Shown here: positions 24,903 to 52,232 of the stretch, piece by piece | Layout of the letters: each line of letters begins with the position of its first letter | Numbering within the stretch: the first letter of the stretch is position 1 | Source of the DNA: Ophelia neglecta | Lineage: Eukaryota | NCBI GenBank assembly: GCA_965285935.1 | Contig: OZ260667.1 | Coordinates: 26,226,001-26,290,000 of the forward strand | Direction of reading: 5' to 3' | Length of the DNA stretch: 64,000 bases | The notes under the pieces: model-generated | Database searches by the model: none | Told to the model about the DNA's origin: nothing | What the model saw: only the letters and a program-made list of their open reading frames with translations | Program-made: the position numbers and the translations under genes

Positions 24903-25467
24903 TCAGGAAAACTCTTTAAGGCACCAACTGGTCATTGTTAAAATGAACAGGGCAAATAAACGGTTGGACGGAAATAAGGCAAAGCCACTGAAATCGAACG
25001 AGAGCTCTAGATGTGCGCCCCACATTGTTAGAAGACGGTTATGCAAACCGCGGACCCCGCTGGAAGACGAATAATTACATGCTCCCATCTGTCCGTATAC
25101 TGCCAGTGTAAAATCAAGTAAAATGCCGTTAGGTGAGCCACATGAGCTGATGGCGATGTACCATTGACGGACCTTGTCCGACTTGATTATACGGCCTCCA
25201 TGACAATGGATCTGCCGCTCCCCATTTTGTGTTACATTGCTGGTACAGCCACTAGAAGGCTGGCTGGGCGATAAGGTGATGACTTGAGGCCCAAGTGGAT
25301 CCACCACGCTCTGTTTCTGAATACAGTTCATGCGCGCTCTCAAGAAATTCGTCTGCTCTTCCATGTATAAAATTAATTTGATGCAGCACCGTTGCTCAGG
25401 ATAGTGGATTTTGTAGTAAAACTTGGCACCGTTGGCACGCAGACGAAATTCACCAAGATAACCATAC
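24903..25467 (-). CDS. Constant terminal exon: TMEM145/GPR180-type luminal (GOLD-like) domain plus hydrophobic GPI-signal-like tail
   Basis: ctttccag acceptor before 25467. The motifs YPEQRCC-LILY, NCIQKQSVV, QVITLS, SGC, HCHGGR, RQWYIAISSC and GILLDF parallel TMEM145 motifs recalled from memory (YPEAKCC-ILLY, DCLAKESVI, QVINLT, SGC, SCSSGR, RWWYIALSKC, GLQLEY). TGA at 24905-24903. Confidence 0.85.
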
Positions 25468-25611
25468 CTGGAAAGATATATTATGATGATTCTATGTAAT
25501 ATCATCAGCATAAGAAGCGTTATAAGCGAAATAAGACGTAGACAATAATTATCTGGATTTCAAAATGGAACCGAGACTGAATATAAAATGTATGATTATA
25601 TGATATCTTAC

Positions 25612-25752
25612 CAATTTTTGGAGATATCAAGTCGACCACTGGCTTCACAGGGGCCGGGATGTTCATATTCGTTTTCTGGACTCGCCTGAGAGTCGTCCCC
25701 GCCCAATGGGTCTGTCCCATTTACGATAAAGGTACATTGGTCTACGTGGGCA
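25612..25752 (-). CDS. Constant middle exon (AHVDQCTFIVNGTDPLGGDDSQASPENEYEHPGPCEASGRLDISKN-W)
   Basis: ccatttcag acceptor, TG|gtaagat donor, 141 nt, phase 2-2. Joins the terminal exon in frame (KNW|YGYLGEF), resembling TMEM145 G.L.SKEDWVFL. Confidence 0.85.
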
Positions 25753-27953
25753 CTGAAATGGAGAAAAGTTAAAAATGGCGTACGGATTTGACTAAAAACC
25801 TTTTGCCTATTCTGATTATTGCACTAGATTAGAGTATTATCTAAGTCTAAAGTGAGCGCTTTGTACTCGATCAACTAATATAACTTTTTTACAATTATAA
25901 CACAATGCAGGGCCGCTGTCTGCACCCCAACCCAACCCCCGCCCAAGAATGAAAAATAAAAACAACTGTAATGGTAAACTAAATGATATTGCCTGATCTA
26001 TCTTCTGCATATCACTAAATAGGCTATATTTCTAGGAAAAAAGATATATAAACTCTCAGTGCACAGTTTGCAAGAACCTGAATGTAGACGACGCAGGGGA
26101 CAACGTTATTTTTTATACGGAGGCCTTTGATTTATCGATGATAGCGGAAAATAAGTCAACCTTTTAGAGTGGGATTTGTAATGAGATTAGTTGACATTAG
26201 CCTAGCCTAACATGGTAACCGATTGCGAATCCCCGTTTTCATCAAACAGGAGTGTTTGTAAGCCTTAAATTGGAAGCTCATTTGCAATTCTAACGGCCAG
26301 AAGGCGTTTAATCCTATATGGAATACGAAGGGCATGTTGTTTTAGGACTGCCTATAGATGCCGTGGGTTTCCTTGAGGAACCAATTTTCAAAAATGCTAA
26401 GCTGCTTATTTGTGCTGATAAACGCCGATCTAAATTCTATACTCGACGTTTTATAATACTCGGCGCCGACACACATTGGCAAAAATAACAATAAGTCTGG
26501 AATTTGAATTTAGTGCCAGTGTAAAATAAGGTAAAAAACGACAGTGGCTCTCCTTCCCAAGTAGGTTATTTTAGAGATAAACATTGTTTGAATCAATAAA
26601 CATGTTTCCAATTTGTTTTCTTATAGGTAGGCTAAGCTGTTTTTTTGTCTACATTTTAAATGAAAGCATTCTTCGAAGGTGAATGCGTCGCCTTCATCAA
26701 CTGAATAAAACTAGTTGGTGTTACAGTTAGACTGGGTTAGCTTGTGCGGTGGCTGGGGGCTGGATTAAATCAGTGCCTAATACATCATGCTGCTGATTCG
26801 AGCCTTAAGGCTACCACCCGAGGAAAGCCGTCTTGGGTATGATGAGGTACTAACAATGACCGATGTACCTTCCCTGTGGTCTGAAATGCCGTGTTGAGGC
26901 AAAAACTTCCTCCTAGTACTCCTCGGGCCTTAACATTCCTAGAAAGATAGCAATACACGATGTGCTAATCGGGTTTTTGGTTATACTGTTTAGGGTAAAG
27001 TGTCGTTTATCTTTCTATACAGACTTAACGGGTATTTTTCTTGGCATGATATTTCGCTATTCCAATGGTTCCCATTTTGGCCTCTCGTAACTGGAGCGAT
27101 CTATAAACTTTGAGGTTTTTCTCTGCATCGATGGAGGAGGCGTGGCTTGCACGACACTCAATTAAAAAACTCCATGTGCAGCCATGTTTGAAAAGGAATT
27201 TGGACAGAAGACTTGCATTTGATTGACCAATAAATCACAGAGCGTCATGTAAACGTCCCGGTGATTATCACGGCCTGCTTTCATGTAAATACATCGCAGA
27301 ACCTTCCACCTTGAAGACGGCTGTCAGAAGCTATCATGGTCAACTATGTGCATTAAGTTAACTTGATAGTTGTCATAGCTGCAAGAATTGGAAATGGCGC
27401 ACACACTGCTTTTTCGAATAGGGTATGACATTTGCCATCATAAAAATGAGGTCTAATTATGTAGATGAGTCGATAAGGAGGCCGTAATCCGTCCGATAAA
27501 TCAAATAACTTGATTTTAACGCTGCTTCGCAGAACACGTGCAGCAACTTTTCTTCGAAACAACGAGTCCATGTTCTTCGTCTACTGTACATTCCCACAGT
27601 ATTATTGTGCTACTGGACTCTTAAGACTTCCTGGATATATCCAGCTATAGCCCACATAATCTAATGGACACTGTCTAGCATCGTGCTCTGATTTGGTTTA
27701 ACTCATAGTGTATAGCTGTGAAATTAGGATCTTACTTAACCGAAGCGGGTATTTGCAAGCAAAACACTCACCTTTTTACGTTGGTTTAAAAACTTTAACT
27801 GTGACACACCAAAAGCTGAGGTACATGAAAAAAACATAACCAAGTCACTAATTGAGACTTCAGACATATAAGCGGATCAACAATTATAGGAAAAAAACTG
27901 CAGTACATACCCGACAGACAAAGACAAATCATCATGATGAATAGACCATTATA

Positions 27954-27997
27954 TACAATACAATACAATACAATAAAATACAATACAATACAATACA
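27954..27997. repeat. (CAATA)n pentanucleotide microsatellite
   Basis: tacaatacaatacaatacaataaaatacaatacaatacaataca. Confidence 0.9.
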
Positions 27998-30900
27998 TTG
28001 TATAGACAATGCCATTGATGAATATACATTTTCCCGCTACACAGGGTATACGCCAAATTAAATCGGCCAGGAACTCATCAAGAACCGTTGGTTTGAATCA
28101 GATCAGCGACAGGAAAATTGGAACTTGTGTGAAATACAGTCGGAGCTACACTTGCCCAGAGCAAGTTTAATGATAAAATCAGGTTATCAATCATAAGCTA
28201 CAAACCTTCTAAAATCCAACTAACATAGCTTCAAAATGTAATGTACGAGATTTTAACCTGCAGAGAAAACTTGTCTTGTGCTATTTTAGATTCAATATTG
28301 GCAATTCGCCTTTAGCTAGCGAGGCCTGTGTACGCAAGGAGTCTCGTTTCTGTTTGAAAGGTTCCAAAAATTGAGGGAACCAGGTGCGACTTATCACCGC
28401 CCGTTCCTTATCTCCATGGTTAAATGGAATGAATAATGGACGAAACTATTGGACAATTCAGTTTCCTTCCTGAGGTACTAAACCTCAGATTTGAATTAAA
28501 GCGGTCCATGATTCATTTGTCTTTAGTTTCAAATAAAATCATGCGCTCCAACATATACAATGTGTAATAATAGTTGTTAATAACTTTCTGTTGGTCAATT
28601 TCTAAGAAATCTTGTAATAAGGACATGAAGAAGTTGGTTATTCGTGGATGCACATTTTATCTCTTACTGGTTATAATAGTCAGGTTATCCAATAAGGACT
28701 TACATCGTGGCCAATTAGATTTCATGTAGCGAAACTGTAATCACCACTGGTCCAGGTAAACATAATAAGTGGATTGTAAAAATATAGAAAATCGACTGAA
28801 CAAATTTGCTTCAACTAATGCAACAGTCCCTGTATGCACGAGAGCTATCCTATTCATTGTCATATTCTGCGGACCATTCCCATTATTATCTATAGTAATT
28901 TTAGTCACTGGATGTATGAAAAACGAAGAAACTATGCATAACACCTGTTTATATTTGGAAATTAAAAATTTCAGAACAAGTTTCCATTTATTTGGCTAGA
29001 ACAGCTTTACCCGCCAATAGTATAGCAAGTACTAATTCAAGATACGGAATGCGAAAGTTTGTCTATAATAATGTTGCCATGTCTATCTCCTTGGTGAAGT
29101 TACAATTGATCGACCATGTGGAATTATGGCTAAGGCGTGTCAGTAATTGATCCCCACTTTACAAACCACCCACCAGGGAGAAACATGGTAATCCAAAAAA
29201 GCCTCTGCTTATTATAGTAATCGACGTAAACTGAAATAATTATTGCGGTTAATGGGATCCGTCTTATGGTGCATCAGTAAATACACCAAAGTACATGTGA
29301 GTACTAAGCACTGATGTGTGCGCCATATTTTCTTTAATCCTGAATTGACATTTATCCATTACTCTGATATGAAATATCCTTGTAGTGTATTCCATGAAAT
29401 AGTTCACCATTAAGGCTGGATATGTAAGGCAATGCATAGGCAAAGAAGGAAACCATGGATATCTCTACAACCAATACAAGAATTTGAGGCTAAATCTGCT
29501 TGAAAATAGTTTCTTTTTGCAAGAATAGTGGCTGCCTAATATGAGCCAATGAATATAATTTGGATAAGTAAAATAGCTTTCCTTTGAGCAGAGAATTTGT
29601 AATAGTTGTACGTATAATCATCAATCTATAGAACTTGCTAAGGGAATGCAGCTATGTACCATGACCCTTATAGCTTATCCCTTACTACAGTGGAAAGCAG
29701 TACTGTATTTCCCAATTATATTCTTCTGTCACATTGTTTTTCTCTTATGACTTGTCAAAATAATAAAACTATTTGGGATTTCCATAATATTAAGAACATT
29801 ATCAACAGGTTATCAACTTTCCAAATGGTAAAAGTAACTTTGTCACATGTCCAAACAGAAAATTGGCAAACGCCAAAATGATTTGGAACTGATAAAACCT
29901 TCCGAATTTAAATCTGTTTTCAATTTGTTGATTCATGACAGCATATTGAACTGTACCATTTTATTTCTTCATTCATATATTCAAGGGCTTTCAGTCGAGG
30001 TCGTAGCAATATTCTTCACAATAAATCGATTTTCGTCTTATATAATCATGGTGAAAGAACCTCTCATACAACAGGTATCCACTCAAATCCCACACCGGGC
30101 CTTTCCTATATAAAGCAGAGGGAAAGGTTAATGGTTTGGACCTGGTTGGAAATCTAGAAGGGAATTGAAGCTGGCTATTATCATTCAGTACAATCATTTT
30201 TGACAGGCAGTAGTGGCATCTGTGAAAAAAAAGAACCCTCCCCTAACTTATGCAATCACTCTTTCCTAAACGAAGTATGACTGATTTCGACAAGGGTATT
30301 TTACTCCCGGGTGCATCAGTATTAATATTGCTATGTTCAAGGAAAAAAGCCATTTTTCAAGTATGGCCCTTGGGTGAATACTCAAGTTCATTGCGACGGT
30401 ACAAAATATATTGAAGTACGTGCTTGTTGATACCATAGCGGAGTAAGGTCCTGAAAAAAGTAACATTTCTACCATTTGATAACGGAAAATGAAACACAGT
30501 CTCTAAATGAAGACAATGATATCGATCATGTTTATAGAGAGCTGTTGTTGGTCGAAGTGCACACAGCTGGTATTAGGAAATGAATTACAATAATACAATC
30601 GGTGCAGTTACAATTGGAAAATGTTTAGCATTCCATTATCAATAAAAGATTTGGAGAGTTGTGATATAAACGTCGATATCAAGGGCTTGCGGCTCAATGC
30701 GTATTATATCCCACCTAGCATATTTCATTGGCCCAGTGTTCTATAGAGACACTGCCGATGCAGAACATATGGAAAGCTTGTTTTTCAGCAACATTTTGCT
30801 CGATACAAAGATCCCCGGAGACACACATACTAAGTTGAAACAGGCAGAGGTAGCGGAGCGAATTTTCCCAATTGCGAACTAATTGCAGAATCACATTCAA

Positions 30901-33900
30901 AGCCAAATAGCATGACGTGGTTTCAGTGTTTAAATCCATCAGAAGAATGATAAATATGAGGTAATTTTATCGACTTTCGAAGCCATCACTGAAACACACC
31001 AATTTGTCTACATACAATTCAACCACCATTTTTCATTTGATTTGCCTCATTTTTAATGACAAGATTACCATTTGGAGATAATTAAGTAATTATTTGTAAC
31101 GTTATATCATGACCAACACTTGCTTCAATACCATTTGCGGCAGAAATCCAATTATATCACTCGTAGTCGAGCTGAGCAGGGGAGTCTCGAAATCTATCAA
31201 AGCAGGACCAATCACGATAACATATTGCTACACATAAAATCATCTTACTATTAAACAGCCATACCAATAAAACTATTTGAATTGACTGCCTTATTTTATA
31301 AGGCATGTTACTGCTCTTACTGTACGTCTACATAACATCACTTAAGTCAAATAGCACGTCTACCCTCTATGGCTGTATCGTTCCGGAACAGCAACAAACG
31401 CCGTTCAGACAGCTGGGTACATTCACAATGCTTCTCAACCCGAACGAAACCAAATAGGTATAATGTGGCACAATGAAGTGCTTTCGGGTGATGGCATATT
31501 AGCCTGGTAGCAATTAGTTGTCTTGTGTTCTGAGAGGGGCAGCGAGGGATAAGAGGGATGGGAAAGATAAATGGATTCCATTACCACTGACCACATTTGC
31601 CAATCCAGAGAACAATATAGAGATAAGGGCATGGCTTCATCGCTGCAGTTCCTTATGCGGCCGTAGCGTCATTAAACTGGTGTTTCCATTACGTTTTAGA
31701 GAAATCAACTATGATAAAAGCCTATAAAGCAGAAAAAGCCAGGACCAGTTTGTCCAAATATTTTACCCACACGAAATATGGTTACACAGGTCAATTTGCC
31801 AATATTGCGAAACCCAATAGCTTTCTTTTATCTACTACAATGAATGTGATCCATTAAATAGTGACAAACTTATGGGTATTATTCTATTATGTTTTCACAT
31901 GTATCGGCCAATTATAATACACTTCAATTTTTTGATATTGTCATTTTTAGGTGGTACAGAAACTACTATGTAATTTGTAAAATTGCGAGACGTTTTTCCA
32001 ATTTACTTTTGGTCCCTGGACAGTATCATATCTTGACTCCCGGGTTTATTCGGGTAGATAAAGGATAGATCAACTCACATCAAGAATAAAACTCAAACCC
32101 CTTTCTCATTTATATACTGAGTCTTGAATTAGATATCGGCCTGAAGGGCTGTTGAAGACGCGCATCATGACACTCGGCATTCTCCGCGAATATAACGGTA
32201 ATTTACGGTAGTCTCCGGCACTGGCTGTTCTAGGAAATTCACATAGAACTGCCAAAGGGTCGCATTCTGTGTTTTAAATGTGAATTGAGACTTTTCGATG
32301 CCAAAAGAAGTATACGTTAACAAAGCTGCATGCAGTTGTTATTTTTTCTATGCCTTAATAAAGTAAACAAGAAGTGGACATCCGGCAGACAAATCAAAAT
32401 CATTAGCCAGGAAAAGTCCATTAAATTGGTGCGAAAACACTAAGAACCAGGCGATTCAGGCTGTAACCAGCACTGTGATTGGCAGGTAATTCCGAAGCAA
32501 TATTCGACTGAACGGTCGATGACTAAAACCATAGTTTTACTTCAGATATGTAAACGAATAAGATAAAGCACAGGGTGTGGTAGCACGTAAATTTGTCCTG
32601 GGGATAGATAAAGAATGAGACTAGCAGGCACCTTTAATTTGAATATTGTATAATTAATCAAATTAAATTACAATTCCAGTCAATTCGCATATCTAAAATG
32701 TGCATTTATAACGTTAGCAGCTTCCTTTTTTGTATCCCTGGCCCTTTTTTAAAAATCGGATTTGACCTGGACAACAGTCAACGAACCTGACCAAATGGAC
32801 TAGTTTTGGCTACAGAATTCTAGGATCTTTTCTTATAGAATGACTATAAAATAAATAATTTCGCTCCATTTGAGGAGACATGAAGCGTATACAAACGTCC
32901 AGTTGGTCGGCTACTGGTTTCTACATACCGGTCAGATACAGCGAAAAACAAAGTTAAGCTAGTACTAGCCTCCGGCTGCTGATAAATGTTACATAAAAAT
33001 CAAATTCAAAGGTTTCGTTACCGTGTCATGTGGCAGTTTAGGGAGAAATCGCTATAGTGAATTAGGTGACAGTTGAGTAAGAAAAGCAATGATCGCCAGC
33101 AAATGATCAGATTGATCACCTTATCAGATTAATCTGACATGCTTGCAGGCAAAGTCTAACATATCAAGTAACTAGCACGAAGAATCCGAGCAGTCCATCT
33201 TACAGTTGTTCTAATATGATCAAACATATCAATACTTTGCTCCTGTCGAGCATACAACTTTGCGTGTCATGGATAAATCAGGGCAAGAAAGCATTAATAA
33301 TTTCTGCAAAATTATCAAAAAACTAATCAGAGGAAGGAATCTCATGGACACGAGGGAGAGAACCCCACTATGTTCAAAGAGTGGAAGTCATTAATCGATG
33401 AGGAAAACATTATGCCGATATAGATTTTTCTTGTCTAAGCTATCATCCGTTAAGCTTTTTGGTACTGTCCAGTGACTTAATTATCATGATGTTCAGGGTC
33501 CGTATATCCGTTCTTCCTGGTAACAGCACAATTGCATTATCAACCTAAAACAGACTCTAGGCGAATCTATACAAATGTAAATTGAAACTCAATAGAAGCA
33601 GACGGCAAGGCAATGCATTTCAACCCATGTTGTTCTCTTTGCAACAAAACAGGATTACCGGCGAAATTGTGGGAATGGATCAGTACCGTGGCAGATAAAC
33701 GTATCGATGTGCAACAAATCACTATGTTATTTACAGTACATGTAGAACTATAAGATACCACTGAGTCATATCACCGGAAACATCAACAGGTGAACGGGGA
33801 AACACAGTGAATCAGAAAAAGCGAAAAATTTAATTAATTTTCCACTAATTAATATCTATCCAGGTGGAAGGAATTCTGTGAAAAATGACATTCATTCAGT

Positions 33901-35903
33901 AAATAAATAAATGGATGGATAGATGGTCGGATGGATAAATGAAAAGTTTCATATTATGCTCATGGCATTTAAATGAAACAATCGTCAAAATGAATGTCAT
34001 ACACAGTATTTACTTGACTTCCTTTTTACACGTTTATCTCGAGCCATTAAGTAAATATTTGCGCTGAAATTTCACTTCTCAGTATCACTTTGACAGGTGG
34101 TCAAGAGCAATCATTACGTTGCTCGTTAACCGAATATATAGTAATGGTAAAAAAAGTCACCTGTAGAATCCTGACATATGTCATTCTGTGAGGTGTCAAT
34201 GTATACTATATGCCTATCAGGCACCGTTCAGTAAATATAATAAGTGGAGAAATCAGTGGTCTGAATTTGATCTGGAAAAAGGTCAAACCCAAATTCAGAT
34301 TCATCATTAGGTTCCTTGTACATGGCTTCTGTATATTTTTATGCCTTTCTAGCACCATTAAGAGTTTACCATTCTACAGTCAAACATTGCAGGACTCTGG
34401 TGGCCCATTTTCTGAAATGTCTTCATTTACAAATCTCTACACGGATTTTGCGTACTATATGCATCCATTACATAAAACCGTTATGTTGGTATCGCGAAAC
34501 ATAGGAATTACAATACCATGACCGTTGTTGACATTATATTTCTAGAACGTAGTCATAGACTTTCCAGATCTTGATCGCATTATGTCTCATGCAGTGGTAA
34601 AGGTGCATGGATATTGGTGAAGAGGTTTAGCTATTACAGAGTAACAAAATGCAGCTGAAACCGAGGACGCCGACGGACACACGAGGATAGAGGTACATCC
34701 CAACATATGTTTGGCTCTGTCGCCTTAATGCATATGATAGTCTTTCTAACAAATTGTCGTTTTCATGGTACATGTTTAATGTTCCAATTAGCCTTCAATG
34801 CGTCGAAAGACCGTAAATGGTAAATCATGCGGAGAACATAAGTGTCAACTTTTTAAGATACGATAAAAATACATCAACCAAGCATATAATACCAAGAAAC
34901 ACAAAAAATCGAAGCAATCGGGTTAAAAACGGCTGGTGTGTGTATTTAATAAGTCTAAGAGGATGCCATGACATTAACATGAAATAGACCACCCAAACCA
35001 AGAGGGAAAAATAAGAATTACGGAATTTGTTGCATAAACAGGAGAGATTTATGCGTTTCAGATTTTTATGATGGGGATGTTGCTGGAGACGAAACTGGGC
35101 CCATTGTGTTGAGATTCCATAAATTCGATGAACGGCTAGACATGAATATTTCATATTTGTTTTGGTGTCCAGTTTATCCAATTAAATTATCTAGTCTACC
35201 ACCTAAATATTCTCTTACGTGACTGAAGTCATTAATGCCTTCAAAATCTTTTAAGACCCTTTCCAATATCTAACTTGGTAGCTTTCATCGCTTTATGTAC
35301 ACTCGAGACGCATTGAACATTAATTTTATGACAAATCTACCTGTCACAATTTGCCTAACACAGCCCAGTGCACTCTGAGGTTATCGGCACGCCTACTTTC
35401 AAAATATCAGCGTCCGTATTGGCCATGAACTAGCCATATTAGGTTATAGGTTAACATATTTGTGCATACCAAATGTCATTTCCACTGTCTGTTTAATGCA
35501 AAATTCACAAGAAAGGTTAATCCCACGCGTGTTGTATTACATTAACAATACAACACTGCGGCTGATATCAATTTTATACCCCGTTATGCGTATTCACGCA
35601 TTTATATATGAATATATGTATATATATATATTCTAGATCAAAGAACAAAAACGACTATTTGTTATCGGTGTTCGCATTTCTGGCACCTTTGAGAAGTACG
35701 AATACAATGCCCATGTTGACAGAAAAGCCCTGTTACGAGGTAAGCAGGAATACGCAGTTGAAAAACAAAACATATTACGATATTGTGGTGTATACTTACC
35801 AAACATATCAATGAAAAAAGTAGTTAAAACGGGAGATGTGAATATGTTACAACATTATAAGTAATTCGGTAATATTATTATACGTAAGTTTCAACGCACT
35901 TAC

Positions 35904-36100
35904 CAGGGGAACTCAGTGCCGGAGGACCAGTAAGAGAAGCCTTCTGGTTCTGGCATAATTCCTATTGAGTTGTTTTCTGGTTTGGACTGAGAGAGAACCC
36001 CGTCGAATGTCAAACTTAAAATAACAGCCGTGAAAACCAAAATAGGTGAAAATCGCATAAGATGTTGTAACAACATTGGGTATCCAACCAGGTTTTGCAT
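35904..36100 (-). CDS. Variable signal-peptide exon V1 (MQNL...ILVFTAVILSLTFDGVLS/Q...EPEGFSYWSSGTEFP-C)
   Basis: Hydrophobic signal peptide, shared EPxGFxYWxxGTxFP motif, phase-2 TG|gtaagt donor compatible with the exon at 25752. Confidence 0.8.
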
Positions 36101-37613: not shown

Positions 37614-37813
37614 CAAGGGAACGCTGTCCCGGCGACCCAGTAAGGAAAGCCTGTGGGTTCCGCAGGGAAACTCATCGAAGAATTATCTGTTGATGACATG
37701 GTTTGGGCGCCAACCGTGTTCATCGCTACTGATAATATATTGAAAACTGCAGCACAGGCGACAATGAAAAGCGGTTCAAACATCATTATATAATCTCGAA
37801 CCATTACTCTCAT
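37614..37813 (-). CDS. Variable signal-peptide exon V2 (MRVMVRD...VGA/Q...EPTGFPYWVAGTAFP-C)
   Basis: Same motif and same phase-2 TG|gtaagt donor as V1 and V3. Confidence 0.82.
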
Positions 37814-38215
37814 CTAATCCAATTCAGGACACGTACGCGGGAAAAGGTAACAGCCACTTCTAGGCTAGGAGCAGCACTCTGATAACAAGTGACCTTATAG
37901 TAATCCTAATGTCGTTGGAAAAATACCTTGTCAGTGTTATATCTTAACTACTCCACCAATGAAAACTTGTCAATACATTGGTAAAATTTTGTTCCCTTGT
38001 AGCATTCGCTTTTTTGAAGACAGTGGAGCCGATCTACCTCATAGCAGGCCAAATTTCGGACCATACTTCTATCATATAAGTTCCCTCCGTTCTGTCGTGT
38101 GATTTGGTCGATTTTTATCCTCATTACGGACAAAAATAAGCTATTAAGGCCGTCATGTGTATCCGATGTCACGCTCCCACAATGGGCCAGACCATCCACT
38201 AGCATTCAACCCTTT

Positions 38216-38330: not shown

Positions 38331-41300
38331 ATCATCGACCAAACCTGGCTACTTATGAATCAAATGTTACCTGAATCATAATTCTTTTCAATTAGAACAG
38401 CCTTACTCACGTTTCTCAACAATTCGTGCATGATTTTGTTTTGTATGCACTGTATCGGACTTCAAATGGGATATTTCTCTCGGTAAAAACTTAACCACAG
38501 CAGATAAAGGTCAAGGTGAAGCATTGGGCCGCTCCTGGACCTGGAGAGTCTAAATTTAGCTGTAAGGGAGAAAACCTATCAAGGATATATCTAAGTCATG
38601 CAGAATCCCCAAAAATATGTGAAGAAGCGTCATTTTTAATTACAAAAGTAATGACCTGTACGATTACTGCGTAGGAAAACATCTTTAACTGTAGATTGTG
38701 GTAGAAAAAATAAAGGTCTGTCTGCACCCCAACTAAACTAAGCGATAATGCCCCCGGGAAAACAAAATCTGATTGTCTCGTCTTAACATGTACATCCAAT
38801 TATTGATTACCCCTTTTAGTATAAACATTGAGAAGAGACAAACCAGGGTTTCGGTTCAGCACAAGGAAGGTCTGGATACTCACATGCTACTGCCAAAGAA
38901 ATAATGAAACCATTGTGAGCCCCTAGTTTTATGTCCCTTCCTATAATCTACTGTTAGGTAAATTATACCTAAAATTTTAGCATACTCGTTGTTTATCTAA
39001 AATATTGAAATGGATATAGCTGCGAAATAGTCAAGACCCTTGCTATCCGCTGAAACCACCTAGTTCTTGATGATGGTATGGTGTGCTTATTATACAGATA
39101 GAGAGTAGTGTATATTTAGGCACTAGCGGGAAACTACGGAATGAACAAAACTAAAAAAAGCTCAATGCTTCGCACTTCACCAAACGTTAAAACAAGGAAG
39201 CATATAAGTTGCAGGAGGCCATTTTATGTAAAAAAAATTCTCAACAAATGATCGCATCTTCTTTACGGGCTCTGGTAAAGAGAAATTTACTGGACATGTT
39301 AATAAGCGCGGTTTCGTGGTTGTTTTGAAGTTTAATTGGGTAGTAATTCGAACTTTTTACAGTTTGAAGTTGAATGGTTGAAGCTTTTTTAATGGAGTTG
39401 CCAATAATTTATATGTTTTACAAAATATATGGATAGGGATGGGTCCTACTATTCCTTAAAACAAAGCCACAATTTGGCGCCACAATATTAACAGACACCA
39501 CAAGAGACAATGGACGAATAAAAGTATAGTGTGATAAAACAATAAATTTTACAACAATTTGAACTGGGGATCCATACCTGGACAGACCCTTGAATTGTAA
39601 ATATGGATATGATTGTGGTATGTTATATTTGAAAAGCACAAATTTTTAAATAAACATAACGCGTCATTTACTTATCCCATTATAACAAGGTATGCACAAA
39701 CAGCATATCTTTTTAAAATAGCCTTAACACGTGACATACAATGTAGGCCATTTGTCAATAACATAGCGGTTCATACATTATGAAAGTGAAGCAGTCATAA
39801 CGACGCACGGTTTGGTCGTAATCGTTCCTTCACCGATCCATCATGTCGCCTTTACCTAAGAGGGGTTGCCAAAATAACCCCTTTTATCGACCTTAGCTTT
39901 CTGCAATATCCTATAGAGGGAATGAACGTGACCTCAAGCTGGGTTTGGTAGACGCATGCGATGATTAGCCCCAAGGCCCGGATTCTCATCGAGAAAATAC
40001 CAGTTGAAGACATAGATTTAATAGTCCACGAACGCGTTTAGTTCTTTCCTGTCTGTCTTCGTTCATCGGAATAGTGTTCTTGGCACATTGCCTTCATACA
40101 TTTTAGAAGAATGTTGTAAAGCGTTAAAGGAATATATATTGTTCTGTCGAATAATAAGAACGCGGTTTTTCAACGTTGCATCAGTGTCGGGAGCTTTCTC
40201 GTGGTTAAGTTAATACATCTGTAGCCTGAAGAATCATGTTTGGCTAGGTCATTCCAATTAAATTATAAAATTCTACTTGTTGAAGTCCTGAAGTGAACAG
40301 TAAAATTCTGCGAGATTATGAGGGTTTTTCTCCCTCTTCAAATTTACCTTTTTGTTTTTTAAACCTCAGCCATCTTCACCTTCTCTTTACTGTGATTTCG
40401 CCCACCCTATATTGATATGCTTTTAAAATCAGTTGAATGTATTGATTTTTTGACCTGATAAAATATTTCTGCATTATACTAGACTCACGAAATTCTACAC
40501 ATTTCTCCCTGTTATACAAAGCAAAATTCAAACGTCCTGGTACAATTGTGTCGATCGCTTGATGAATGCGTTGGTCTCTTTCAGAAAATGAATCAAAAAG
40601 GCTGCCTTAATCCTGATGGAACACAGGTAACCCGAAATGACCCCGTCCGTCCATATATTTTAAGGAATGCAATTGAAATATCTACAAGATGTTTATCAAT
40701 CGGTACGATAATATGCTATTATTCTGGAGGCGTGGGATTATTCAAGCACGTTGATTCATGCCCCACAAATGGCTTGTCTATATGTTCGGCATAGAAACGG
40801 AACAATGACATGGTATTGCCTTTAATGAAACATTTTTGTAAGATGAAACTTGAATCAACCTAATGAAATGCTAACTTGCGATCTAAAGGCTTCATTTGTT
40901 GTTCAGTTTTTATTGCCAAAAGACAACTGCATTTTGACTGGTCATTTGTTAAGGAAAAGTATCAGATTTATCCAAATAACACAGTTTTGGAACCACTTAC
41001 AACGACGGTGGCTTATAGTCATATGTAGCTACATAAAATCGGTCAATCACTGCCGAAAATAGATATGTGTATATAAGGAGATTCTACATAATAATCACAT
41101 AGTTATGTCTTTAAAATTTGCAAGTGTCATAAGCGTGGTAGTCATAATCCATATAGAAGTATCGTTATTAAGTCTAATGAAATAATTCGGATAACACGAT
41201 TTGATACTCTATATCGGAAATCGAAACATATCGTTTATTTTTCGGAACTATCTATTTGATTTGTCGGTTTTCAACGGTGCCTATGCCTTCACGGAAATTT

Positions 41301-41688
41301 GCTTATTTCATACTTTCTCGAATATAATTTCTTGACCTTAATGAAGATGACAAGTCCTAAAGCAATAAAGACGGATACAAACTCGGACTGAGTTAAATTT
41401 TAGATCTGAATGAAGATATATTAGTTATATATTAATGAACGGCAAATTTGGTTTAATAGGATATGATTTCCATCAACTGAATCCGGGAAATTTGCAACAT
41501 TACCTAGAGATTATTTGTTCCGTATCGTTAATATACTCAAACAATGCTATTCACAAGTTTAGGGTGTATATAGTATGCTCTTTTTGTGAAGCACACTTTT
41601 GAAGCATTTGGCTGTTTTCCAAGCACTTCTTGCAATCTTGTGCTAGCTTGCTCATTGACTACTCAAGCACAACGAGGAGAACAGTAAT

Positions 41689-41866
41689 GGCCGTTTTCAG
41701 GTTAATACCGGAGGACAGTGTCCACGATCGATCTCATGGATAATTTGATCGTGCTCAACTTAGTTACCGCTGTCGAGTTAATATCGTCGGTAAACTTGGA
41801 TTGTCGGAACTACTCATTTTATCAGGGTTGCTTTATCGCACCCGGCAGAGCACAGAGTATCAATCT
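41689..41866. promoter_or_regulatory. Conserved non-coding element, copy 1 (about 3.9 kb upstream of V2)
   Basis: Gap-free 178-bp alignment to 56037-56214 with about 40 mismatches; no reading frame is open in both copies. Confidence 0.7.
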
Positions 41867-44325
41867 CCTGAGGGCGTTCTCTGAAAATAACAAAGTAAAT
41901 GTGGACCTTGGCTCCGAAGACTAACCGGACAAAACTCCCTGCAAAGCAAAAATCTGATACGAAGTCAATGTAGCACATCAATTAATAATGCAAATGATGC
42001 GATGGTTGCATATACTTCACTTCTGGATAAGCAGATAACCGTTTATCAACTCCAGGGGATGCCAATGATAAAAGTCTTAGTATGAAAATGGCCTGGTGGG
42101 TTTCCTTTAATTCAAATGTCACAAAATCTTGTGCACTTAATCAGACCCATTGTCTTAAACAGCCTACCTGAAATAACACTTCACACTTAGTAAGGGATAA
42201 TGGCCTCAAAGCGATCAGAAACATGCTACATGCGGGTATCATATACCGAGGAGTTGCCGACAAACTTTGTATTTATTTGCTTGATCCCAACATCTACCAC
42301 TAGCTCTCTACGACACGGGAGATACAGAAAGTGAGCAACTGCAGGTGGATATTAAACTTGATTAATGAATATACTTTGTCCTTCGCATTCCCCTCTCGTT
42401 TTATTTATCTTTTCGATCACTATATGATATGAGAGTGTGACGTTCTCACATTTTCCCAATTGACAACCGATTTGTTCAATCGACGGAAAGTGTGTGTATC
42501 ACTGCTATAAGGGAATTTTCAACTGCTCCTTTAGTCGCATGTGTACTGAGACTAGTGTATGTTGTGGTATTTGTATTCTTATGTCATCTTCATAGGAGCT
42601 ATATCCTAATTATTCTCAACGAGGATCAAATACAACCTCGTCCTACACTGACCAACAACTCAGGAATGGCACACATCGTGGAATTATGACGACTGTCACT
42701 GATTACATTTAAATCTCGTTTATATTTCGTCCTCCATGTATAGTTTTTATATGATGAGCAAAACTTTGCAATTGACGTTCCCGGTATATACGTTTCTAAG
42801 TTACCCTGGCTGCAAAGTTCCCCAAATCAAAACTCTAGCAAACGAGACACATATAATTAACTATTGGTTTCCGACCAGGGAACGTTATAATCCAGAGTTT
42901 TCATACCGGATTCCTGCACATACTAAGATTTCTAAATCGATGGACTTTAAATATTAGTGTTCTAAGTCCGGGGTACTCTTGGGTTGAGATTAGTAAATTC
43001 AGACCAATGAGACCTCCCACGGGACTGCCAACCAAATACAGGTACTGTGTATCGAAGAAATAAAAATATTTGTATTGTCTCTCGGATACTTATAAATGTT
43101 TATTTTTATTAAACTTGGGCAAGCAAGCCTTGATAGTAGATACCAAATCGAATATTACTGTCAAGTTTTGTTTGAAGGAAATTGGCTAGACAGATAATTC
43201 CCTCAATTATTGGATGTTTCAATATCATATCATCTCATTTAAAGTTTTTTCTGTCGAGATTTTATTGTAAAATAAACTTCCGAAAAAGCATTCAACTTTC
43301 TGTTGTAAACACTGCAGAGACACACTGCAGTGATCAAGCATGAAAAATGGTCCAAATAGATTGCCGCTTACAAAAAAGGTTAATAACAAGTGGCTTCAAC
43401 GGCGCTCGTCATTTATTATCCAATTATATAACTTGATTGGATGGACAAGATATGGGAGACTGGGTACAATGTGAGAGTCGACAACTGAGATAGGAACGTG
43501 TACTCAAAGGACAATTGTCCGCCTCGATGAGCTATTTGTATCCTTTGTTGTTTTCTTCATCACAATTGATATTTGAGAATTACCATTATGTCCCCGGCAA
43601 CTCGCCCCAAATACAAATAAGCACACCGACCCACAATCTTTGCTTCTATGGTGCGCAATGAAATAAACTGTATTATCCTCTGCATCATTTATTTTATGAA
43701 AAAACAAGTCACTATAATAAACTTACTAAAAATAATGAATATATAAATGACGATCTCGAGTACAACAGACATGATTTCGCTGTTGTTACGTTAAAATGGC
43801 TGTGCGCGGCTTGTAGGAGGGTCTTGGGGTCGGGGGGGGGGGGGGTGCTAGAAGAGATGCCCAAGACTTTCATTTGAAGCAATTATACTTCCAACACTCA
43901 GTTGGAGGTTCCTGATGAACTGATTTAATACTATGAGGCAGAAAAGCACATGCTCTTACATGTGCCCACACAACTTCTGTTCATGACTTACGCAGAGCGT
44001 TTAAAAATAGCTTAGTGTCCATGACAAAAAGTAAATGTCTCCCAAATTGAAACCGATAAGTGTTGAAAGCCAGGTAAAACCCCAAACAACAACAACAACG
44101 ACCAAATTATTATTACTTACAAAATAATATTCACAAAATAGATTGACAGATCAAATAAACATCAGCTCAGTGTGATCAAAATTTACAAACCATCGTATAT
44201 TATTAGAACTCAACAAATACCCGCATGAATGACACTAACCAAAATGAAATTGCTCCAATCGTAAGTCAATTCAACTCAACAAGGGCCAAACATGCATCGC
44301 TATCAAAAAAGGATATATTGAATAT

Positions 44326-45400
44326 ATCATTATTATTATTTGTTTATTTTCCTCAAATGAATGAGAGCATACATAGGTATAACGGTAAGTAAGGATAATC
44401 AAAATAGTAATAGGTTAATAATAGAATACTATTTACCATATCAAACAAGTGTTCATCGTTCACGGTGACTTCATACTATCTAAATAGATTTATATATACG
44501 AGGTAGTATACATCGTGCGGGCATATGGTCCAAATGCACACACAACTACTACGATGAGTTCCTCATAGTTTTTTTCAATTTGTACTAAGTTTGTGCCTAA
44601 CAGGTTTGGTATTAAATCAGGATCGTCACTCAAAGTCTACAATTTTACAAAATCCTTTGTGGACAATAAATTCACTAAAATTATCCCTGACATCAAATAA
44701 ACAGAAACAGCCGGAATCAAAGAACAGGTGAGCTAAAGGGTTGATTATGTTTTTTTGACAAAGTAAACATGAAACATTAAAACATGGATTGTATAGACTG
44801 ATTTGGGGCCTTTTCTTTGCAATCCCATAAAAAGACAAAGCTTGATTGGGAGATTCTTGGTGGACATTAAGAAATGTAGTTAGCCCTGGTTTTGAAAAGC
44901 GACCATCGTCTAATAACAAGGTCTCATGTTTAACCATTGAGGTCCGCACGGTCTGCTTCCACTGTTGTTTAGTAGGTAAGATAGGGAATTGGTTCTGCCG
45001 AGACTGTTCCCAATAGGATGATAGTTCATATTTACTGATCAACCTCTTAATATCGGGTACAAAAAAAACCAATGCGCTCGGCGCTGCATATGTTTCTACG
45101 AGACGGTGTTGAAATATGCGTCCCGCAAGGTGTCTATTTGGATCCAATTAACACAGTTTATGAAAAAACATCAGCTTTTTATAGTCGATCTGTGTTTCTA
45201 AGTGAGTCCAGCCAAGAGCGCCTAGTGCGATCTCTGAATGTGTTCTGGGGACAAAGCCTGAATATTCTTTGCCACATAACGGTGAAGGGCTCCTAGTTCT
45301 TGAATTTCAGACTGGGTAAGGTTCGTCCATAATTATATACTGCAAGGGTAATTTTTTCTTTCAAATTCTTAATAGTTTCATTTGGTTGTATACTTGGATT
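44326..45400 (-). mobile_element. Decayed 5'-truncated non-LTR retrotransposon 3' end (RTE-X-like)
   Basis: Minus-strand translation with a frameshift and stops gives LWTNLTQSEIQEL...KNIQ / RTHSEIALGALGW..LETQIDYKKLMFFHKLC ... PTKQQWK ... CLLC...HLFF..C, typical post-RT and zinc-knuckle sequence. It ends in AATAAA followed by (AAT)n. Confidence 0.7.
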
Positions 45401-48400
45401 AATACGTAAACGGCAACATTCCATGGTATCTGGAGAGTAATGGCGAAGTTCATTATTAATAGTGACCCCCTTTTAATGTTTTGCATTTCATTCCTTTCCG
45501 GATACCACACACGTTGTCCTGTTCCTTCATTGGTTAGATATGCATGTAAACCCACCCGCTACCCGTTCTTAATCAGCCACAAATCCGTGTTACCACAATT
45601 TGACTAACATGATTGAATATCCAGACTTGCCATGTGATATTGCGTGTGAATGGCTAACAGGATCAGGTATCGGGCACTTTGTTCAGCTGTGGCGGAAATT
45701 ACGTATGAATCACATACTTGAAGTATTCGTAGTCAACACGCAGGAAACATTTAAAGGACAAGGTCTATAAATGAGAGTAGCTTCAGTTTATAGCATGGTA
45801 AAACCTGGGCCGTAATCCACACTATATCATCGGCAAACCAGCCAAATGTTGCTGTCCAAATACGTTGTTTTTAAGGGCTGCAGCAGACCCTCGGGTCAGA
45901 GGAATCTGACTTGTGATCAATGATATTGTTCTACCTGACGGGTGTATTTCTTCCCATTTTGGAGAGGACAAAACTGAAATTTTCCATGTTGATCACTTTG
46001 TCTGAACAACCCATCAAGGGATAAGTTCATGTTTGACGCACGCGGTTAACAAATGTTTCTCAACAGACAAACAAATCCATTATACAACAGTATATTTGAC
46101 TAGACAGCTTATCTTTCTCTTTCTCTTCTGCCCGATCGCTGGACATTCACTCTAACCCTTTATTCACAGATAACAAAAGATTGTCGAATGGCGGATTCAA
46201 TAGGAAAAAATTAATGGTACAGTGCGAATCTTATACCAGCTTTTGCTAACATACGTTTATTTCCATATCTTAGAAGAAAGCAAGTGAGAGCCACGACACC
46301 ACGAACATGTCCCCAGTGCGATGGATACACGGATATAAATTAAGAAAAGTGCATAATATGCTTTGTGTAGCAACAAGATTGCAGGCATTGGAGCAGGGTG
46401 CTTCCCAAGAACAACAATTTTGGACAAGAATGGCCAATTTCATCTGACTTCTAAGGTTGAAACGATCAGGAATCATAGCACTGCGATGACTTAACTCTTT
46501 TTCCTTCAACTTTAATGCCTGTTCTTTCAGCTCAGGTGTGAAAGGCTAGATGTCCTACGGGCAGACTCAGTGTCTATATGGACAATCTGTGCTTAAAAAA
46601 GTTGTGGATACGATGTCATATGACTCTTGAGCCTGGACTGACTGTCCGTAGGAAATTTACATCGTCCTCGCCACCTAGAATGATTTTTTTGCTTCTTATC
46701 AATTGGAGCTTAGATATCCGCAAAAGACAGTCGATTGGAACGGAAACTACAACGGAACGATCCCAGACGTATTACACTCGAACGATTACTGAGACATGCG
46801 TCCCATAGAATAAAGATATGATAAGAAGTGTTCGATGACCATTTCCCCCCGATCTTATTCAATGTGTCTTAGAAAAACAGATAATTTTGCTCAGTAACAG
46901 CAGTGACTGTGTTATGGAGATTCAAAGCCAAGTTTAACAACAGTTTCATTTAAACTTTGTCCTTTAACGGGTTCTAGATAACCGGTAGACAAACCAAACT
47001 GCTGATCAAGAAGAATCAATTAAATCGGTCCTAAAAGAGTTAATATATTTAGAAAACGATGATTCATTGTCAAACAACGTTTGACTGTCTCTCGCTGCAT
47101 AGCGCAATTGGTCGATATATTTAAAGGGTCGGACTTGATGTGTTGATCGGTAGTTACTCCAAGAAACTGAATCGACCTCTGGCAATGTGCATTTGACCTG
47201 CTACAATTAACCCGTCGAATGTGTCGAGAGTGTTTCATTGATGGGACGAACAAGTCATTGCATAATTATTATTCAAATTGTACCCCCCCCCCCCCCCCCC
47301 CCCGACCGTATAGGATATAATGATAATCTGGTCGAATATATGTGTGGCACAGTGTGAATAACAGAATAAAACTAGAACAAATGAGACCACCATGGACTGG
47401 ATAAACAGTCAGTTTATGGAGGTACTATTGCCGCTTAATATGAAAACGAAGGCAACCCAACACCTTTACTGATTAAGCAAAACTATTCTACTCTAAATTC
47501 CTAACAACAGTGAAATGGTGCAGTTGCATCTGACTGATTCCAAAGAGGCACGTGATATTGCGTGTGCTTCCAACGCCACGTTGAAAATATGACGTTGATT
47601 AATTATATGATCAGACGCTTTAGGTAAAATTGGACTAAACCGCTTTGTAGAAAGAATTTCAGTACCTCTTTGGAACAATCAGATCTTACGAAACGTCTCT
47701 ATTTTGATACCAAGCCAATTGAATTAACGTAGAAATTATTAGACGAAAGTATTGTTGTGGGACAGAGAGTCCCGGGAAGAGATACGGGAAATACGGATGA
47801 AATGCGTGCAAACATCGTACATTGCTTCTTGCAAATAATTACTACTTTCAAACTACTGAGTCCTTATAGGCCAGTTGGGAACACTGAACAAGGAACAATG
47901 GTATGATGTTAGTAATTAGTCTGATTTGAATCCAATCCTATTTTAGCTTTTTCTAATATGCGCCCGGGCGAACACTGGGGTTCCCGTGCAGTTAACATGA
48001 AGTGCCTGGCTTTACTGTTCACATCAATGCAGTCATGTGTATAAACTCCAAAAGGTAAATAAAAAAACATTTAGAATATAGAAAATGTTAGGGGTCGTAT
48101 CTGCTGGTTTTTTCGTATTACGCAAGATTTAAGGCGTAATACGTTGGAAAAGCATCGGAATAAAAGCCAAAGTCGAATATAATTAGATTGAATGAGTAAG
48201 TAAGAGCCTTTTTTGGGCAGCTTATATGTTATGGAATTGATTAAATAGCATTTTTTTATTTAGCGTTCGCCAATGCTTGATAAAATGTTGAGTTACTTTA
48301 AGGAAGAATTTGTCCCAAATGACTCATTTTTAGATACGGAACACTTAATAAGTTACCAGGTGACCGTTTCTGTTGATTATTAAACCACACCTCGCCCTGC

Positions 48401-51400
48401 TCATATCCCCAGGGTTTCTTATGTGCAGTGAGCTGACGCATAGTCGGGAAAGCTGTTACCATTAGTAACAATTCACCAGATGAAAAGGGCCCCTGAGTCG
48501 CTTACTCTATTTCTACTGAACTGAAAATGCAACGGTGGAGCAATCGTTTTAAACTGACGAAGGGCTGCAGACCGGATGGTTGAGCACGGGCCTTCATGAC
48601 ATCACCTTAGGGCAAATCCCTTGTCGCGAAAATTCAGACACGGGCAACTTCAGCATCATTTTTCACTTCCAGTTGCGTGCAGCTTTTCTGCCAGACTATT
48701 TCGTTAGAATACAGGTTCTTAAAAACCGGCGTTTTGAGCCTCATTTCAAATAAATTAACTCTGAAATAGTCAACAAAATTCTGTATGCTATATATGAAAT
48801 CAAAGGCGTTGGTTACGTGCTCGGGGCTGATTATTCGGTCAATTATGATGCTAAAATATTTCCAAGGAGCCAATAGATTGAGATGTTTCGTGCCAAAAAA
48901 TGCACTTTTCCAAACCTAGGAAAATTAAATTGCATCTAGCAGTGTATACAATACTTCATAAATCCGAATGACTACAGAAACAACGTCACGTCATTTATAT
49001 CATAGCTGAACAGTTATTACATTGTATTTTGTATTTTAAGTAAATGGTAATGGGATAACATGGGAATGCAATGAAAAGGTAAAATCTCTTTTACTAATCC
49101 TAATCCTCATTTCAAAGAAACGACAAGGTTGTGGTTTTAATTGATAAACTATTAATGATATCCATTAATTGTATCCTAAATTTCTTGGCCTTAAACATGA
49201 CACGGACAAGCAAGTTCGGGGTCATAGTAAAACTGCCCTCAAAGCAATAAGATAAGGTGTATGACAGGGGACTGCCCTTCACCGTTTATTCACAAGCGTA
49301 TTTCGTATAAAGCACCGATGATTGAGTGATTTGTAGAGAAAGGCTTTTTTTTCATTTTTACAAGTGAAAAGGGTGAAACCAAACAAATATACAAAACCAA
49401 ACTTAACTTACAGCTGCAACCTCGAATTGCATTGTCGTCTCATCTATGACATTAGATAAAAACCTGCCATCCTCCCAAACGTGTCTGTTTGAAGAAGCGT
49501 TACAGTGTTTGGAGTATATATTAACTAAATATTTATGTTGAGGTATCGATTAAGACGTTCGGGTATCATGAACGTGTTATTTACTTATATCTTTAGCTTG
49601 AAGATTTAAAAATGTCGGTAATCTCACACCTTTGTGGATTAACTTTTTAACACAAATGTTCACGCTGGGTGGTGTCTGTCACAGAAACAATCCATGTATC
49701 ACAATCGTCAATGTAAATTATATTAATCTCATTGTGGACACACACCTGATCTATTACTATGTTTTAGCTCGTGAAATACAACTGGGGCCTGAAAGTGAAA
49801 TTACAGGAAACAGGTTGCAATTTAGAAGACAACTATGATTGATACATTAAAAAACCATTCTTAGCTTTAAGTACACGTCATTCAGATGAAAGACAGCACT
49901 AAAATTAGGATGGAGGACAGCCTTCTCTACCCACCAACTGAAAGATGACAGATCACATGCATACTGTTCTTGACCCAGACTTGCATTGAGCCAGCTCATA
50001 CACAGTAAGAGCAAAAAAGGCCGGCGTATAACTGAAGTTCGGCTACTTGACCTTTCAGGAACGCCAACAGACTAATTAGTATGCCCAGCTTTATCCTCTA
50101 ACTCTTACCAATTCATAGTTTTGGTGCTCTTTCGAAAGACCAATGTAATTTCTGTCCAAAATGGTAATTGATTGGCTGACTGATTTCAGCGGGTAAGCTT
50201 GTTTCTTCAAATATTTTCATGATGAATGCGCAAATAATTGTCTACACATCTTACCGCTTATTCCGCTAAGCAAAATGTTTGTTGCTCTCATTGTACTCAA
50301 AATATTGTTCTTTAGTTGCATAGAGCTTTGCTATGAAGCTTACAAGAGGTCACGATAGTTCAGTAACAGAATACCGAGGTACAGAAACAAAGCTTGAACC
50401 TAATGTGCCAAGCATCGTGTCGACAAAATGTTCGATCAAATTTCATATTTGCTTTGTTGCCGGTGTGGTATTATTATGAAAATCTTTCTCATAATACCGA
50501 ATCGGAGTTGAACTCAAAGAATATATATGATTTATAACTTATCCACTTCCTGCTGCTGGCCTGCTGATTGAGACACCACCTATCATGCGTGTTTACCTCG
50601 ATGACTGTCCTCCTAGTGGTTGCAGCCAAACAAGTCTGTTTGATAATAAGTGGCTGTCAAGGATTTAAGGTCGATTGATGAAGGGTACATTGATCCCAAC
50701 AAAAAATGGCTAATGCTTCAGAGCACACAAAAACATCTACCAACCACAAGCAGACTACCGAACTGATTGCTCAATCGAAAGAGGAGTAGGAGGTTTTTCA
50801 ATGTATCCCTTACTGCCTCAAAGGGTCATTGGTGTAATTCAACTCAAGAATTTTTTCTCAAAGCAAAGAAATCATGATACTTATTTAAATGTATTTGGCT
50901 TGATTTATTAATTCAAACAATAATCTTTTTGCTTCTTTCATGAGCAATTGCTATTAGACCAAACAGCATCCATTTTAAGACTAAAGTGTCTGTGGTTTGG
51001 AAGATGATCGTTTGCTGTATAGTATAAACATATTATAACTGGTGCACTTAAATAGATATAAGGTTATTCATTAAGGTCACCACCTTAATAGAATGATGAA
51101 TTAAGAGTGTTTATATTGTCAGCAGGTAAATTTAGAATCCACAAATACTAGGATAAGGTTGGTGTGTGAATGTGCCATGAAACGCAGTAGTCAGTGAATA
51201 ATATTGACTTAGGGTGATGGCTGACTGAGGGCCAAAACAATTCCTGAGGCAAAAACCTGAGGCCAAAACAATTCGATAATGCTATGTACTGACCAACAAC
51301 TTTCCTGTCAGAACAAGTAGTATCTGTAGGTTGAACCCTGTGAAGGGATAGGTTTGTACATAGTACGGTTATTTCGTCTTGTAGTGTTGAGGAATACCGG

Positions 51401-52041
51401 GAGGGAGTTCAAACAACATACGCATAAATGTATCTCCGTTATATATTAAGTTGCTTGACCTGCTGGTGCCGTTATAACCGCCTGGCATCTTTACCAATTT
51501 TACCCTATCCATAATACGATAGCCTTTCTAAACGCACAATGGAAATGGCAAAATATAAATGTGCAGTATAACTGATAATAGACCTATAGATATTGTAGTG
51601 ATTTACATGTTTATAGGTGAACTCAAGCACACTGGTGAGAAGTTAACCCCATGAGAAACCCATTCGGTTACTCCATTGTGTCCTTCCCTAATAGTGATTA
51701 GAGTGACATTAAATCATACGTTAGACACTCTCTCGTGTACCCACGAGCAATGAGATGTGGCAATTGACAGCGAGAGAGCCCTCATTAAACTGGTTGAGCT
51801 ACACACAAGCGGCCGGGGAATTGTTTCATCTGCCTCGTGTGCTAATGAAGACAAACAAGGGACCAGACGATAAACTATCTCTCCAAATCTACTTGTTCAC
51901 GACAAATGACTATTTACTGTGGTGAAATGATTACGGCGCTTGGTTAGCAGGATTTATTGCAACATTAATTGCACGGTTTGGCAAAGGCTTTCAGTCATAT
52001 GAACTGAAGACCGGTGATAATGGACAATTTAGGAAACTTAC

Positions 52042-52232
52042 CAAGGGAATGCTGTACCAGCGACCCAGTAAGGAAAGCCTGCTGGCTCGGCCTGAAATCC
52101 CATCGACGAGTTCTCCGAAGGTGACATCGACTGTCCGTCCACTGCGGTTATGGTAAACGACAGAACCTTAAATACGACGGCCGAGGCGACTATAAGCAAC
52201 GGTTTAAACATCCGTGCATATTTCTGAAGCAT
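52042..52232 (-). CDS. Variable signal-peptide exon V3 (MLQKYARMF...VDG/Q...EPAGFPYWVAGTAFP-C)
   Basis: 38 of 63 aa identical to V2 without gaps. The terminal 12-aa motif differs from V2 only at synonymous sites. TG|gtaagt donor. Confidence 0.82.

Follow-up and report, generated by a model that had tools for sequence, protein, structure and literature searches.

How does a gene with a single set of downstream exons come to have three first coding exons, and how are they used? This question is raised by a window of 64,000 nucleotides (nt) of the Ophelia neglecta genome (assembly GCA_965285935.1, contig OZ260667.1, positions 26,226,001 to 26,290,000, which is C12:26226001-26290000 in our numbering). 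Here, three related exons on the minus strand (V1, V2 and V3), each encoding a signal peptide, lie upstream of one pair of exons (C1 and C2) for a small GOLD-domain protein. On balance, we consider it probable that all five exons form one gene, in which the V exons are alternative 5' coding exons that would each be spliced to C1. The assembly is chromosome-scale (762 Mb in 223 contigs), and the window has a G+C content of 38% and no runs of N. All positions below are those of the window unless another contig is named. Homology searches and folding were done exon by exon, and joined exons were used for frame and length arithmetic only.

Three variable exons and one pair of constant exons

The exons are listed from the distal to the proximal end of the gene, a slash marking the boundary between exon and intron.

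52042-52232, minus strand: V3, distal variable first coding exon, with an ATG, a signal peptide, an NSS sequon, the EPAGFPYWVAGTAFP motif and the donor TG/GTAAGT in phase 2
37614-37813, minus strand: V2, middle variable first coding exon, with 60% protein identity to V3 and the same donor and phase as V3
35904-36100, minus strand: V1, proximal variable first coding exon, with 35-44% identity to V2 and V3 and with motif, donor and phase in common
25612-25752, minus strand: C1, first constant exon, single-copy, whose acceptor ...tttcag/T completes a Cys codon; 72% identical to its orthologue, with the same splice sites
24903-25467, minus strand: C2, last coding exon, encoding a TMEM145_N/GOLD domain (residues 3-118), then a disordered linker and a hydrophobic C-terminal helix, with the stop codon at 24905-24903

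V1 follows V2 by 1.5 kb and precedes C1 by 10.15 kb, and 26 kb separate V3 from C1. Each of the three V exons starts with an ATG and encodes a hydrophobic core (Kyte-Doolittle 11-residue maxima 2.6-2.9), which is followed by a small-residue site and an invariant Gln. All three contain an N-x-S sequon (NNS, NSS and NSS) and the motif EPxGFxYWxxGTxFP, and 20 positions are invariant when the three peptides are aligned. The 3' ends read ...CC(C or T) TG/GTAAGT in every copy, in phase 2. C1 begins with cag/T GCC, where the T completes TGT (Cys), and ends with ...TG/gtaaga. When V, C1 and C2 are joined, the frame stays open for 300, 301 and 298 codons (V1, V2 and V3, respectively) to the stop at 24905-24903. 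The original prediction had described three minus-strand signal-peptide exons with these motifs, a common phase-2 donor completed by the T of C1, and proteins of about 298-301 residues; coordinates, translations and frame arithmetic agree with it in every detail.

That prediction had also counted only one copy of the downstream exons, and this was borne out both within the window and genome-wide. Translated searches (tblastn) with C1 and C2 returned only self-matches in the window, and C1 was found once in a six-frame search of the whole genome. The TMEM145_N profile of Pfam matched once on the chromosome of the window, at C2. No private copies of C1 or C2 were detected behind V2 or V3 at E-values up to 50 in the window, and none genome-wide. 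A profile built from the three V exons and run against the whole genome retrieved exactly V1, V2 and V3 (E-values 1e-27 to 1e-37), all of them within the window. Across all 762 Mb there is thus one constant pair for the three paralogous signal-peptide exons, and no further V exon beyond the window.

The C1-intron-C2 part was also compared with independent contigs over positions 24500-26100. One sample's three sequencing runs gave DNA contigs that are collinear with the assembly here, keep the C1-C2 intron and contain no joints; this independent check of the assembly covers the C1-C2 part only. At position 24913, three codons before the stop, all three DNA runs differ from the assembly, with GGG (Gly) in place of GAG (Glu) on the minus strand. 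One run differs from the assembly at about 1% of sites, and in the same run the C1 donor is changed from gtaaga to gtgaga at position 25609, which is still a valid donor. Just below 24502, about 400 nt past the stop, the run contigs diverge from the assembly, which suggests a structural or indel polymorphism.

The variable exons are old and constrained

Pairwise global alignments of the V exons gave z-scores of 9.2-21.8 against shuffled sequences, and the 200 nt on either flank gave z < 1. The similarity is gone right after GTAAGT. At the DNA level the copies are 66-73% identical, with unalignable flanks. Between V2 and V3, nonsynonymous divergence (dN) is 0.25 and synonymous divergence (dS) is saturated (at least 2.2), with a ratio (omega) of about 0.1. 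In the 12-codon motif GFPYWVAGTAFP, three codons differ between V2 and V3, and all three changes are synonymous. Over the last 16 codons there are six synonymous changes and one replacement. The suggestion, made earlier from the synonymous-only differences in the terminal motif, that both exons are under selection was thereby strengthened. V1 is more diverged than V2 and V3, yet equally intact.

These patterns indicate that the V copies are old and constrained, with long-term purifying selection on all three. Recent gene conversion between V2 and V3 was ruled out because their silent sites are saturated. Neutral decay of V2 and V3 was likewise rejected, as relics of this age would not keep an ATG, an open frame, the motif and a donor intact at 6/6 positions.

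The encoded protein

C2 residues 3-118 match the Pfam family TMEM145_N (PF21892) with an E-value of 4.2e-22 and a bit score of 79.3 (cut-off 28.1). AlphaFold, run on C2 with 15 homologues, gave a beta-sandwich with a mean predicted local distance difference test score of 82.7. The closest solved structure is the N-terminal domain of GPR180 (9fow_C, Z 8.3, root-mean-square deviation 2.6 A over 98 residues), and the next matches are the GOLD domains of SEC14L, supernatant protein factor and p24 (Z 5.5-6.4). The stop codon comes about 60 residues after the GOLD domain, and the orthologous and Capitella proteins described below end alike. No match to the seven-helix domain PF10192 was found near the window on the same chromosome. 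A single hydrophobic helix is predicted at C2 residues 168-186, after the disordered linker, and a HMMER search recovered a family of GOLD-only proteins that all have hydrophobic C-terminal tails. This tail is probably a signal for attachment of glycosylphosphatidylinositol (GPI) or a tail anchor.

GPR180 and TMEM145 belong to the GOST proteins, in which a GOLD domain is combined with a seven-helix domain (PMC11605061, PMC9711517, PMC12789471). They have in common with C2 an N-terminal luminal or extracellular GOLD-like domain; in place of their seven-helix domain, the protein described here has the single hydrophobic helix. The N-terminal extension encoded by V and C1 is absent from vertebrate TMEM145 and GPR180. 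The original prediction of a TMEM145-like surface or secreted protein therefore stands: the gene product is a small GOLD-domain (TMEM145/GPR180-like) protein of the secretory pathway, for which membrane anchorage is suggested by the tail.

Other members of the family are present in the genome. The canonical TMEM145/GPR180-type gene has its seven-transmembrane (7TM) exons at C7:13864443-13870082. In this gene, three tandem paralogous exons each cover profile positions 58-127, the latter half of the GOLD domain, and lie within 2.1 kb, at C7:13877011-13879117; a ...SGC...SRSFRSSRERWW... core is retained in each. This triplet is a candidate set of mutually exclusive exons within the same protein family. 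Two paralogues that look intronless were found at C5:34128168-34129097 and C5:56707622-56708020. One of them has two tandem TMEM145_N domains in a single open frame of 420 codons, and it matches two-domain proteins in the database (P0009, P0012 and P0013).

The junction between variable and constant exons in relatives

The closest named homologue is a protein of 266 amino acids from Capitella teleta (ELU03865.1; 'GPR180-like N-terminal domain-containing protein' in UniRef). Over the GOLD domain it is 51% identical (E-value 1.2e-37); it lacks a 7TM part and ends in a hydrophobic tail. Its exon 1, annotated as the first exon, encodes a signal peptide and N-x-T sequons and ends with ...FPYDVTKSP followed by TG/gtgagt. 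Exon 2 begins with aaacag/T GCC GAT, so that a Cys codon is completed as at C1. The Capitella gene differs in having one first exon, an intron of 1.8 kb, and C1 and C2 fused in one exon. Its exon 1 agrees with the V exons in position, phase and content; sequence homology to them was not supported, as the hhalign comparison was not significant and only an FPY-x-V fragment is in common.

In the closest relative, an orthologous contig (ENA ERZ25069296) carries a C1 that is 72% and a C2 that is 66% identical to those described here, with the acceptor ttacag/T GCC CAG and the same intron between C1 and C2. This is a long-read metagenome contig of 3x coverage, and its genes were called with TGA read as Trp. 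As a result of this setting, the N-terminal 8 and C-terminal 11 residues of the orthologous protein P0001 (L021:10001-10654) are artefactual under the standard code, and its true end is ...GLILALFS. A third relative (L032) has gcag/C TCC at the acceptor and, 7.5 kb upstream, one plausible signal-peptide exon ending with TG/GTACGT. A protein search with the V alignment, which was word-indexed and sees only proteins of 35-110 amino acids, gave no match.

The phase-2 intron that splits a Cys codon is thus found in Capitella and in two relatives, and the V-to-C1 junction would therefore be normal and ancestral for the subfamily. Judged from these gene structures, genes of this subfamily normally begin with a signal-peptide exon whose last two bases open a Cys codon, and the genome studied here has three such exons.

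Origin of the array and a conserved non-coding element

A sensitive blastn comparison of the unit containing V3 with that containing V2 and V1 revealed three collinear blocks with offsets of 14.35-14.6 kb: a conserved element here called E, the V3/V2 pair and a weak block of 61 nt. The features besides the exons are as follows.

56030-56214: E_B, conserved non-coding element, 3.8 kb upstream of V3, 77% identical to E_A
41682-41866: E_A, conserved non-coding element, 3.9 kb upstream of V2, 77% identical to E_B
46977-47036: weak third block of the 14.4 kb duplication unit, 72% identical over 61 nt to its partner at 32377-32437, offset 14.6 kb
32377-32437: partner of the block at 46977-47036, found with sensitive blastn

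The duplication unit spans about 56.2-41.9 kb and is repeated from 41.9 to about 27.5 kb, stopping short of C1. This end point before C1 therefore indicates that the 5' segment of the gene alone was duplicated, as opposed to duplication of the entire gene with subsequent loss of C1 and C2. The array would have arisen in two steps. An old local duplication would have separated V1 from the ancestor of V2 and V3, followed by a tandem duplication of about 14.4 kb of the 5' segment, comprising E, a V exon and intron sequence without C1 or C2.

E is 185 nt long and has only two copies in the genome. It precedes V3 and V2, and none lies upstream of V1. On the orthologous contig E has one counterpart (L030:8661-8781), located 5.2 kb upstream of C1 and 76% identical, a conservation on a par with that of the coding exons. 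Motifs resembling GATCGAT are present at both ends, with an imperfect palindrome in the centre. E was rejected as a coding exon, as its changes have no third-position bias and one copy contains a stop. No Rfam family matched in the window, and the consensus fold of E is weak with little covariation, so that no convincing conserved fold emerged. There is no conserved donor 3' of E. We regard E as a candidate regulatory element.

How the variable exons may be used

From the layout we infer that each V copy is spliced to C1 and has a promoter of its own. V3, V2 or V1 would each supply the start codon, a signal peptide, one N-glycosylation sequon, the short motif and a phase-2 donor. Each would then be joined to C1, the sole compatible acceptor in the genome, completing the Cys codon. 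The products would be three isoforms of about 300 residues, consisting of a Cys-containing N-terminal extension, the GOLD domain and the hydrophobic tail. Alternative promoters would most likely make the choice: the cap-proximal V donor would join C1, and V exons further downstream would be removed as part of the intron. After cleavage of the signal peptide, which is predicted before the invariant Gln, the isoforms would differ in their first 28-30 residues only, and the benefit would therefore more likely lie in regulation than in protein diversity. The mature segments of V2 and V3 are nearly alike. The main consequence is probably separate transcriptional control together with small N-terminal variation.

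Several observations weigh against this reading. A search for sequencing runs returned three, none of them recorded as RNA and all genomic DNA at the locus, and both the use of the V exons and their promoters are predictions from sequence. AG dinucleotides 0-36 nt before each ATG leave room for internal exons. Omega between V1 and V2 is about 0.5-0.6, a value affected by saturation. Capitella and the L032 relative each have a single V exon, and the multi-V layout is confirmed in one species only. On ERZ25069296, E, C1 and C2 are present and E is placed differently with respect to V: between C1 and the upstream end of the contig, 15.4 kb away, no V-like exon was found by tblastn, a motif regular expression, a donor-anchored scan of open frames or a nhmmer DNA profile. 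The first exon of this closest relative must therefore lie upstream of E or be unrecognisable. With no V between E and C1 in the orthologue, long-range splicing across E is probably ancestral.

Mutually exclusive clusters of tandem exons occur in Dscam1 and in many ion-channel genes. The V exons resemble them in being tandem paralogous exons of identical phase, of which one is usable productively. They could accordingly be read as mutually exclusive internal exons, with one promoter and a non-coding leader upstream of V3 and with splicing picking one V exon. The AGs stand 0 nt (V2), 7 nt (V3) and 36 nt (V1) upstream of the ATGs, with no upstream ATG, and a tandem exon triplet also exists in the canonical TMEM145 gene of this genome. 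If the V2 donor were joined to the AG upstream of V1, the shifted frame would stay open for 12 codons before a stop. A transcript with two V exons would therefore be non-productive, as in systems that enforce exclusivity through decay of such mRNA, and one V exon only would be usable productively, whether the V exons are first or internal. Nevertheless, we think such internal exons unlikely. Dscam1-type exons are internal and have strong acceptors, whereas the V exons carry a start codon and a signal peptide behind weak AGs: the pyrimidine fraction is 0.41-0.53 at these AGs, against 0.65 and 0.82 at the true acceptors of C2 and C1. The upstream flanks of V2 and V3 have only a 15-nt pyrimidine-rich block in common and are not significantly conserved (p ~0.09). 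The search for a leader exon common to the three brought up none. The E elements are without a conserved donor, and the V-type exon of Capitella is annotated as a first exon.

Three further explanations were weighed. V2, V3 or both might be first exons of separate genes with unrelated, unrecognised downstream exons. V3 does lie 26 kb from C1 with much unannotated sequence between, and the local organisation is fluid, as the orthologue has E and no V before C1. When the V3-to-C1 interval was compared with the orthologous contig, however, only the non-coding E was conserved and no coding block, and the only long open frame in the interval, at 44626-45147, is part of a repeat found at least 150 times in the genome. 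Since the V motif also adjoins a split Cys that C1 completes, as in Capitella, separate genes seem quite unlikely to us. Slightly less credible still is the use of a single V exon, most likely the proximal V1, with V2 and V3 as unused relics of duplication. Relatives do manage with one V exon, but V2 and V3 are the best-conserved pair, with omega of about 0.1 at saturated synonymous sites, and they have kept ATG, frame, motif and the 6/6 donor while their flanks diverged to randomness. An assembly artefact, in which uncollapsed haplotypes or a mis-join added V copies, is extremely improbable: allelic divergence is about 1% here, against 66-73% identity of V copies with unalignable flanks, and the duplicated unit has three collinear diverged blocks in a chromosome-scale assembly.

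Neighbouring features of the window

Past the stop codon of C2, one further feature belongs to the gene.

24585-24676, minus strand: candidate polyadenylation signals, ATTAAA at 226 nt and AATAAA at 312 nt past the stop

A filamin-repeat gene (Pfam Filamin, E-value 1.8e-11) has exons at 8119-18536 on the plus strand and is convergent to the GOLD-domain gene. The filamin neighbour is kept in the same orientation on the orthologous contig, with protein identity of up to 87% per exon, and synteny is therefore conserved. The open frame at 44626-45147 (minus strand) has 173 codons and no Pfam match. It is a piece of a dispersed repeat that occurs at least 150 times in the genome and is probably a retroelement, as the open frames of its intact copies reach about 1170 codons. 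The fragment was rejected as a downstream exon of V3 on account of its copy number. A minisatellite at 53742-54225 consists of three units of about 140 nt (66-74% identity), and each unit divides into diverged sub-repeats of about 47 and about 93 nt; it produces a spurious open frame of 248 codons on the minus strand.

Relation to known systems and significance

Clusters of multiple variable first exons have been described for UGT1A, the clustered protocadherins and GCNT2 (PMC1885805, PMC3325998, PMC3333863). The locus described here resembles them in its tandem paralogous 5' exons, with their own start codons, same-phase donors and one constant set, and in an array that arose by tandem duplication of the 5' part of a gene. 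GCNT2, in which three first exons are combined with two shared exons, is the closest in scale, as there are three variable and two constant exons here. In these clusters the variable exon encodes the specificity-determining domain, whereas a V exon of about 190 nt encodes a signal peptide and about 28-30 residues of the mature protein, the entire GOLD domain being encoded by the constant C2. The analogy to protocadherins and UGT1A that had been proposed at the outset therefore extends to the gene layout only. Furthermore, the promoter element of the protocadherins lies close to each exon, whereas here the conserved elements precede two of the three V exons, at a distance of about 3.8 kb.

A more far-reaching version of the idea would be an independently evolved variable-first-exon cluster of an invertebrate, in which E_A and E_B would control promoter choice by cell or stage and a GPI-anchored GOLD surface protein would receive alternative N-terminal tags. 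We consider this version quite unlikely; if true, the locus would be a minimal, tractable analogue of protocadherin and UGT1A promoter choice outside vertebrates. The design principle is already well known, and the locus is a small new example that extends the catalogue and opens no new question. It is mainly a point of annotation, as gene predictors tend to call V1 only or to split the locus. If the V exons are used as proposed, it would be a compact case in which tandem duplication of the 5' end only has yielded alternative promoters and signal-peptide exons. The gene also defines a little-described subfamily of annelid-like genomes, with a GOLD domain of the TMEM145/GPR180 type, without the seven-helix part and apparently anchored at the cell surface.

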